This document shows positions 42,710 to 43,015 of a DNA stretch of 64,000 nt, in pieces. The stretch lies in IMG/VR virus record IMGVR_UViG_3300022866_000322, positions 1 to 64,000 of that record; one strand, given 5' to 3'. How positions within the stretch are numbered: position 1 is the first letter of the stretch; every line of letters begins with the position of its first letter. The notes under the pieces are model-generated. The model searched no databases and was not told the DNA's origin. It saw nothing but the letters and a program-made list of their open reading frames with translations. The position numbers and the translations under genes are program-made.

Positions 42710-42725
42710 CTAGTAAATACAAGTT

Positions 42726-42990
42726 ATTGCTGTATGAAGTAAGGGGAAAGGTATTTCGGACGCGGGTTCGACTCCCGCCACCTCCACCAAGAGTATTTTG
42801 TTACAGAGTATTGTTGATGGGGGTGTCAAGGTTTCGACGGGGTAAATGAGTACTTGAACAGACAGCACGGTAGGCGATGACCGTTAATCAAGCAACTATA
42901 ATAACTGCAAATGAAAACAGTTACTTTGAGGAGTTTGCGCTAGCCGCGTAAAACTTTTCCGGGGTTGGTCACCTTGTTACCCAATAACCA
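42726..42990 (+). ncRNA. ssrA: Circularly permuted (two-piece) tmRNA; tag ANENSYFEEFALAA
   Basis: T-arm and acceptor 3' end CACCTCCACCA (to 42789) precede the 5' end GGGGGTG (42819); G3:U70 and A73; tag ORF 42907-42951. Confidence 0.93.
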
Positions 42991-43015
42991 GCAGGGCTTT
43001 CGGGCCCTGCTTTTT
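42991..43015 (+). terminator. Intrinsic terminator of tmRNA
   Basis: gcagggc-tttcgg-gccctgc-ttttt. Confidence 0.85.

Follow-up and report, generated by a model that had tools for sequence, protein, structure and literature searches.

A permuted tmRNA gene on a T4-type phage contig

The stretch of DNA analyzed here (the window) is the opening 64 kb of a viral contig that measures 221,342 bp, has 40% GC, and is rated 63% complete by CheckV. At positions 42697-43042 of the window, ARAGORN predicts a permuted tmRNA with the tag ANENSYFEEFALAA. The gene begins with the 3' half of the tRNA-like domain and its CCA end, followed by a spacer, the 5' strand of the acceptor stem, and finally the mRNA-like part. 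The features of the locus are:

42249-42277, plus strand: perfect sigma70-type promoter, TTGACA-17-TATAAT, 12/12 matches
42323-42670, plus strand: upstream open reading frame (ORF) of 115 aa, without assigned family
42683-42713, plus strand: hairpin between ORF and tmRNA, 13 bp stem with a GGGCC/GGCCC core, then TTTTCT
42714-42719, plus strand: candidate promoter TAAATA, 8 nt before helix P2
42728-42789, plus strand: acceptor piece, the 3' half of the tRNA-like domain; 3' end set by the encoded CCA, 5' end putative
42728-42733, plus strand: distal P2, 5' strand (tgctgt), complementary to 42862-42867
42752-42758, plus strand: proximal P2, 5' strand (ARAGORN, Rfam, covariation)
42762-42778, plus strand: T-arm (ARAGORN, Rfam, covariation)
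42779-42785, plus strand: 3' strand of the acceptor stem
42786, plus strand: discriminator A
42787-42789, plus strand: CCA
42790-42818, plus strand: spacer of 29 nt (precursor folding and covarying stem), predicted to be excised
42819-43011, plus strand: coding piece, starting at G42819 and including the tag frame through the terminator stem
42819-42825, plus strand: 5' strand of the acceptor stem, GGGGGTG, whose G3 pairs with U42783
Within the coding piece, plus strand: D-loop analogue GGTTTCGAC (ARAGORN, Rfam, covariation)
42838-42844, plus strand: proximal P2, 3' strand
42862-42867, plus strand: distal P2, 3' strand (acagca)
42868-42893, plus strand: pseudoknot PK1, upstream of the resume codon, with P3 in the Rfam model
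42868-42871 with 42880-42883, plus strand: PK1 stem P3 (Rfam and covariation)
42876-42878 with 42887-42889, plus strand: PK1 stem P4 (read from the sequence)
42907-42951, plus strand: tag frame, from GCA through ANENSYFEEFALAA to TAA (ARAGORN and sequence)
42961-42991, plus strand: probable 3' pseudoknot, GGGT/ACCC and TTGGT/ACCAG around CCTTGTTACCCAA (pairing read from the sequence)
42990-43018, plus strand: intrinsic terminator, 9 bp stem with six GC pairs, 4-nt loop, tail TTTTTCTTT

The preliminary description of this DNA had proposed a circularly permuted two-piece tmRNA, to be checked with ARAGORN or the permuted Rfam models, and the identification is borne out by covariance models as well as by independent covariation (see below). 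In addition to the ARAGORN prediction, the locus matches RF04321 (tmRNA_permuted) at 147 bits against a threshold of 47 (E = 5e-29, model positions 1-213 of 213) and RF01850 (beta_tmRNA) at 140.9 bits against a threshold of 84 (E = 5e-43, model positions 1-331 of 331). The beta-proteobacterial subtype RF01850 is the top scorer of its clan and is matched over its full length including the 3' hairpins, one of which is partly deleted; the CCTTGTTACCCAA motif is kept in the alignment and matches the 3' hairpin of this model. Across the window, tRNA and tmRNA are the sole Rfam families matched.

The determinants of tRNA-Ala identity are present, namely an acceptor stem of 7 bp with the G3:U70 pair (G42821-U42783), the discriminator A42786, and the encoded CCA. 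The tag template is likewise complete, with PK1 upstream, the GCA resume codon at 42907, 14 codons, an ALAA end, and a TAA stop. The positions that had been assigned by reading the letters (acceptor CCA at 42789, spacer of 29 nt, coding piece from 42819, TAAATA at 42714) are all correct, and the frame 42907-42951 does encode the tag given there, ANENSYFEEFALAA, followed by a stop. A GTG-started ORF of 52 aa on the minus strand (42710-42868) lies across the acceptor piece and spacer; although almost certainly not a real gene, it would be listed by a gene caller instead of the tmRNA.

Conserved pairing and the spacer hairpin

A permutation-junction scan of viral contigs returned 68 contigs, in 64 of which ARAGORN finds a permuted tmRNA. 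Together with the window gene and two genes from cultured phages, these contigs gave 44 distinct sequences, which were aligned with MAFFT; homologues outside the window's own group are at most ~66% identical to the window tmRNA. In this alignment, the acceptor stem is 100% paired (slid controls, 52%-71%) and G3:U70 occurs in 44 of 44 sequences, with the proviso that acceptor pairs 1-4, the U at -1, and the CCA were set by the search pattern, so that invariance at these positions is uninformative. Acceptor pair 5 varies between G:C (26 sequences), A:U (17), and G:U (1). The T-arm is 97% paired (controls, 48%-75%), with four pair types at its second pair, and proximal P2 is also 97% paired (controls, 28%-55%). 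The pairing between tgctgt at 42728 and acagca at 42862, which had been pointed out from complementarity, corresponds to distal P2, and is retained in 96% of cases across the 44 sequences (controls, 24%-47%) with up to five pair types. The covariance support that the preliminary description had called for is hence present in the acceptor stem, T-arm, and both ends of P2, which are 96%-100% paired with compensatory changes.

PK1 stem P3 is 83% paired (controls, 16%-43%), and the homologues conserve both PK1 itself and the sequence leading up to the resume codon. The middle of P2, PK1 stem P4 (57%, limited by the alignment), and the 3' pseudoknot reach 28%-57% pairing, mostly no better than controls, in a part of the molecule where the MAFFT alignment is poor.

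RNAalifold independently recovers the acceptor stem, proximal P2, and a covarying hairpin in the spacer, with both sides of the middle pair of the spacer stem changed in 21 of the 44 sequences. Folded alone, the spacer of the window gene forms a weak hairpin (-3.1 kcal/mol, z = -1.15 against shuffled sequences); spacer and acceptor stem together form a single precursor hairpin of 47 nt (-21.5 kcal/mol, z = -5.2 against shuffled sequences). The hairpin-forming spacer suggested earlier is a stem that is weak alone, strong when stacked on the acceptor stem, and covarying in relatives.

The phage genome and the neighborhood of the gene

The contig carries a DNA polymerase and a portal protein of T4 type (phrog_262 and phrog_213). 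Its nearest cultured phages are jumbo members of the T4 superfamily (Sinorhizobium phage Phosso, Agrobacterium phage Atu_ph07, the 121Q/Rak2 group, and Pseudomonas phage PA5oct), at only 42%-50% protein identity. Four other viral contigs of 48-93 kb, each from other samples, are 99.9%-100% identical to it across the tmRNA and its flanks over 1.8-5.4 kb, and the tmRNA itself is 100% identical in all five contigs. CheckV rates these four contigs as 13%-26% complete, from which a genome size of ~350 kb follows. The stretch is found in 14 salt-lake metagenome (DNA) runs. In the structural region of the contig, a single ORF on the minus strand (172830-186989) encodes 4,719 aa.

The only tRNA genes of the contig, three in number, lie ~20 kb from the tmRNA. 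One of these, a tRNA-Ser at 62483-62572 on the plus strand, has the anticodon ACU (loop TTACTAA), the A34 being unusual for a serine tRNA; a perfect sigma70 promoter (62419-62447) precedes this tRNA gene, which is separated from tRNA-Thr and tRNA-Glu by a small ORF.

Searches of the ~63%-complete contig for SmpB (PF01668) and for the RF-1/ArfB domain (PF00472) were empty, and neither Pfam nor PHROG yielded a family for the neighboring ORFs (42323-42670, 43036-43512, and 43556-43930). We therefore rejected the notion that the phage encodes SmpB or another rescue factor adjoining its tmRNA. A dedicated partner role for the 115-aa upstream ORF was rejected as well. This ORF has no homologue in cultured phages; one fragment of a ~360 kb phage does encode a homologue of 54%-59% identity (L072:94-414, plus strand; G157:C1:27171-27482), placed ~670 nt ahead of a tmRNA that is itself very divergent. 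G005, a relative rated 94% complete, lacks the ORF, as do G159 and other tmRNA-bearing phages. The upstream placement is attributed to synteny between related phages. The ORF is possibly co-transcribed with the tmRNA.

The phage also encodes two radical SAM proteins, one in the window (44001-45206, plus strand) and one at L006:16470-18035 (plus strand). The former lies 1 kb downstream of the tmRNA and has a SPASM domain in addition.

Transcription of the tmRNA

The preliminary description had endowed the gene with its own terminator and its own late-type promoter. The terminator is confirmed both by scanning and by folding, as a GC-rich stem-loop at 42990-43011 followed by a T-run; the hairpin (-16.5 kcal/mol, z = -5.4) matches the one at the end of the beta_tmRNA model. 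The promoter claim is not supported, for the reasons set out below.

Immediately upstream of the acceptor piece, TAAATA (42714-42719) matches TATAAT at three of six bases and is without a -35 element, because the strong hairpin at 42683-42713 fills that space. This hairpin (-18.6 kcal/mol, z = -4.2) was not called in the terminator scan because its U-run pairs with an upstream A-run, and it represents either a partial terminator or a processing hairpin. Approximately 450 nt upstream of the tmRNA, ahead of the upstream ORF, lies the perfect sigma70 promoter at 42249-42277, likely the early promoter of a transcription unit that contains the tmRNA, which it would drive via read-through. The surroundings are rich in such promoters: 25 of the 44 best sigma70 sites of the contig fall within its first 63 kb (plus strand, at least 11 of 12 consensus positions), a region that, with its many small orphan ORFs and sigma70 promoters, looks like a T4-type early region.

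Metatranscriptome data are compatible with this transcription unit. In four marine and salt-marsh metatranscriptome libraries, contigs of relatives 91%-99% identical to the window cover 42334-43077, that is, the upstream ORF, tmRNA, and terminator; as these are assembled contigs of relatives rather than reads, transcript ends are not readable from them, and DNA carry-over or divergent flanks may contribute. The contigs of close relatives begin just downstream of the promoter at 42249-42277, and no contig from the four libraries lies over 42043-42285 or 43096-43986, while one RNA run additionally covers part of 41800-42009. Two contigs (42578-42989 and 42588-42787) bridge the hairpin at 42683-42713. 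One contig, which has a single mismatch, stops at 42818/42819, where RNase P is predicted to cut; this is suggestive only. Most contig ends at 42757-42790 arise from k-mers shared with tmRNAs of other organisms and are therefore uninformative on processing. In the RNA libraries, a relative 92%-94% identical to the window shows three changes in the tag frame, of which one is conservative (N to D) and two are synonymous.

An alternative that we consider unlikely is an autonomous late tmRNA gene with its own T4-type late promoter at 42712-42719, the upstream transcript ending at the 42683-42713 hairpin. TAAATA does occupy the -10 position of relatives and of the bacterial beta_tmRNA model, 8 nt before P2, a T4-type late promoter requires no -35 element, and the strong hairpin would otherwise cut the tmRNA off from the upstream promoter. 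The late motif NATAAATA is, moreover, clearly in use in this phage, with 29 of its 41 copies at most 120 nt upstream of a gene start on the same strand, several structural genes included. However, a T4-type late promoter would have TATAAATA (NATAAATA in this genome) at -10, whereas the site reads AGTAAATA, with a G in place of the invariant A, and this 8-mer shows no such preference for gene starts (3 of 8 genome copies upstream of genes). Where relatives have a dedicated promoter, it is of sigma70 type at the same spot (TTGACA-17-TATAAT or near-consensus, the -10 ending exactly 8 nt before P2); other relatives' tmRNAs sit directly behind a tRNA gene. The abundance of early sigma70 promoters in the region, a perfect one of which also precedes the tRNA cluster, and the two RNA-library contigs that span the hairpin argue further against a late gene. 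Elsewhere, NATAAATA sites stand ahead of structural genes, two examples being those at contig positions 69046 and 207494.

The most likely arrangement is thus early transcription from 42249 with partial read-through of the 42683-42713 hairpin, to which the residual -10-only site at 42714-42719 may contribute. The hairpin could also end most upstream transcripts, in which case the tmRNA would rely on a very weak promoter.

A viral clade of beta-type tmRNAs

When bacterial genomes were scanned with a less strict junction pattern, at least 120 loci were obtained. Most of the bacterial matches listed belong to Rhodocyclaceae, Azonexus, Thauera, Dechloromonas, Propionivibrio, and Gallionellaceae, and their tags are near-uniform (ANDE[RQ]FA[ILVM]AA), 95 of 103 among the matches listed being 10 aa long, against 14 aa for the window tag. 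Viral tags as a group are longer and more varied than these. Of 151 genomes sampled evenly across the bacterial class, only 2 have a permuted tmRNA that scores above the cut-off.

When viral and bacterial genes were placed in one tree, 42 of the 44 viral sequences grouped as a single clade that contains none of the bacterial matches listed (support 0.886) and is distinct from the Rhodocyclaceae and Gallionellaceae clades. The window tmRNA falls into a seven-member subclade (support 0.935) with the Stenotrophomonas phages DLP_6 and Yut2, and is at most ~60% identical to the closest bacterial gene among the matches listed. It thus has neither a place within the bacterial beta lineage nor the uniform 10-aa tag. 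The large contigs that carry tmRNAs of the viral clade have T4-type portals.

These placements undercut the idea, advanced in the preliminary description, that a permuted ssrA serves as a clue to the host, since the gene lies in a viral clade outside the bacterial lineages and phage and host tmRNA types can disagree, as in OM43 phage Melnitz (PMC9004378). With Stenotrophomonas phages as its nearest cultured carriers, the gene is a coarse host clue only, its subtype pointing to Pseudomonadota at best. Other pointers to the host are the salt-lake and marine habitat, the 40% GC, the consensus sigma70 promoters, and the cultured relatives, all of which infect Pseudomonadota.

For some permuted tmRNAs in the two scans, the predicted tag is very long (27-29 aa), and some tags have YGT or QQAA at the end rather than LAA (viral loci L017, L034, L073, L054, L069, and L072; bacterial loci L082, L127, L183, L171, L172, and L178). 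The bacterial members of this set cluster separately from the main beta clade and are possibly located on mobile elements.

Comparison with known two-piece tmRNAs

That permuted ssrA occurs in marine phages, as the preliminary description mentioned, is documented: two-piece molecules account for 53 of 133 distinct phage tmRNAs in a 2022 survey, mostly from marine and aquatic phages (PMC9004378), and are included among the 79 phage sequences of a 2025 tmRNA database (PMC11915505). The window tmRNA is a well-supported addition to this documented set.

With the beta-type two-piece tmRNA of Rhodocyclaceae, Gallionellaceae, and related Burkholderiales (RF01850; Sharkady and Williams 2004, as cited in PMC9004378), the window gene shares the permuted order, the full-length model match, the terminal hairpin, the layout of acceptor stem, T-arm, P2, and PK1, and a tag that begins AN(D/E) and ends ALAA. 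Unlike it, the window gene is phage-borne, belongs to the separate viral clade, encodes a 14-aa tag, and is without a consensus sigma70 promoter of its own, and no SmpB was found on its contig.

Among phages, the closest parallels are the tmRNAs of the Stenotrophomonas phages DLP_6 and, from the genus Menderavirus, Marzo, Yut2, and Moby (PMC8928761), which are permuted, of beta type, and carried by T4-like phages, as here. DLP_6 provides the nearest cultured homologue match (79% identity over 164 nt). The Stenotrophomonas phage genes lie in or adjoin tRNA clusters and are apparently co-transcribed with them, whereas the window tmRNA is 20 kb from the tRNA genes; their tags, ANDDSFAPMAIAA and VAANDDSYTVRIAA, differ from ANENSYFEEFALAA, and their acceptor pair 5 is A:U rather than the G:C of the window tmRNA. 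The Marzo genome announcement calls the phage tmRNA "Betaproteobacter-class" and assigns the tmRNA of S. maltophilia to the same class (PMC8928761). The beta-type tmRNA of DLP_6 (KU682439.2; L002:2980-3323, plus strand; tag ANDDSFAPMAIAA) is absent from the annotation of its record, and the same applies to several Menderavirus records.

Melnitz and the pelagimyophages (PMC9004378) resemble the present case in having a permuted ssrA downstream of an early promoter in a T4-like myophage of saline water. The Melnitz tmRNA, however, is of alpha type with a glutamine riboswitch in its 3' part, whereas the window tmRNA is of beta type, with only tmRNA and tRNA matches in Rfam.

The closest cultured relative of the phage, the jumbo T4-superfamily Sinorhizobium phage Phosso (DNA polymerase 50% identical), also has a permuted tmRNA. 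This is of alpha type (RF01849, 108 bits; RF04321, 113 bits) and the window tmRNA is of beta type, so the two related phages acquired different tmRNA lineages. Phosso stands alone among the cultured relatives examined, with no tmRNA in Atu_ph07, 121Q, PA5oct, or XaC1. Its gene (PV764938.1, 349553-350242; L205:954-1643, minus strand) is unannotated and was missed by ARAGORN; the spacer from the CCA end to the 5' acceptor strand is ~390 nt, compared with the usual 20-70 nt. The unannotated genes of DLP_6 and Phosso bear out the earlier remark that such tmRNAs are easily missed by annotation.

Discussion

We interpret the locus as an intact, circularly permuted ssrA gene of a lytic T4-superfamily jumbo phage of ~350 kb, probably expressed early by read-through and probably acting in trans-translation with host factors, a reading to which we give a probability of about 80%. 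We infer the trans-translation role from features that are intact and covarying at the level of sequence.

Under this reading, early-phase transcription of the gene would start chiefly at the sigma70 promoter at 42249-42277 and reach the tmRNA by read-through, with a possible contribution from the weak -10-only site at 42714-42719. Host RNase P would cut 5' of G42819, and host 3' trimming would halt at the CCA at 42789, together removing the 29-nt spacer hairpin. The resulting acceptor piece of 62 nt and coding piece of ~190 nt would be held together by about 20-26 intermolecular base pairs in the acceptor stem and P2. Host AlaRS would then charge the RNA, and SmpB, assumed to be that of the host because no phage SmpB was found, would carry it to stalled ribosomes. 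Translation would resume at GCA 42907, and the added tag would mark the truncated protein for host proteolysis of the ClpXP type. The likely benefit to the phage would be extra ribosome-rescue capacity while it degrades host mRNA.

A further conjecture, doubtful at present, concerns the family as a whole. The beta-type two-piece tmRNA might be an old, phage-maintained lineage that moves among T4-superfamily phages of 150-350 kb whatever the tmRNA type of the host, with longer acidic-aromatic tags (AN[DE]..[YF]..[ED][ED]FALAA) that have diverged from the bacterial tag. Such tags would possibly reroute rescued nascent chains early in infection to a particular host protease or adaptor, rather than just adding capacity.

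The RNA could also be expressed but interfering, competing for host SmpB or AlaRS or replacing the host tag with a phage-specific one. There is a precedent in the tag-less tmRNA of mycobacteriophage DS6A, which inhibits the host tmRNA, and both the empty SmpB search on the contig and the longer, more varied viral tags would suit such a function. However, the window gene has a complete tag frame with resume codon, stop, and canonical ALAA end, as in a working template, the changes seen in a close relative are synonymous or conservative, and PK1 and the stretch before the resume codon are conserved; interference as the main role is therefore very unlikely.

Many temperate phages hold 3' fragments of host tmRNA at attachment sites, which accounts for 42-nt matches in P2-like and other phages, but an origin of the present gene as a host fragment, attachment-site remnant, or assembly chimera is effectively refuted by its grouping with phage rather than bacterial copies and by the five near-identical contigs from different samples, and is further contradicted by its full length, by the phage ORFs on either side of it, and by the T4-type genes of its 221 kb contig.

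The finding opens no new mechanism, as phage two-piece tmRNAs were already counted in 2022 and are represented in the 2025 database. For annotation, it identifies a real RNA gene of a kind that protein-centered pipelines miss or overlay with spurious ORFs. It also adds a giant salt-lake phage to those that bring a ribosome-rescue RNA without SmpB, as far as the fragment shows. Finally, the clustering of phage beta-type tmRNAs apart from the bacterial ones calls for caution in predicting the host of a phage from the subtype of its tmRNA.
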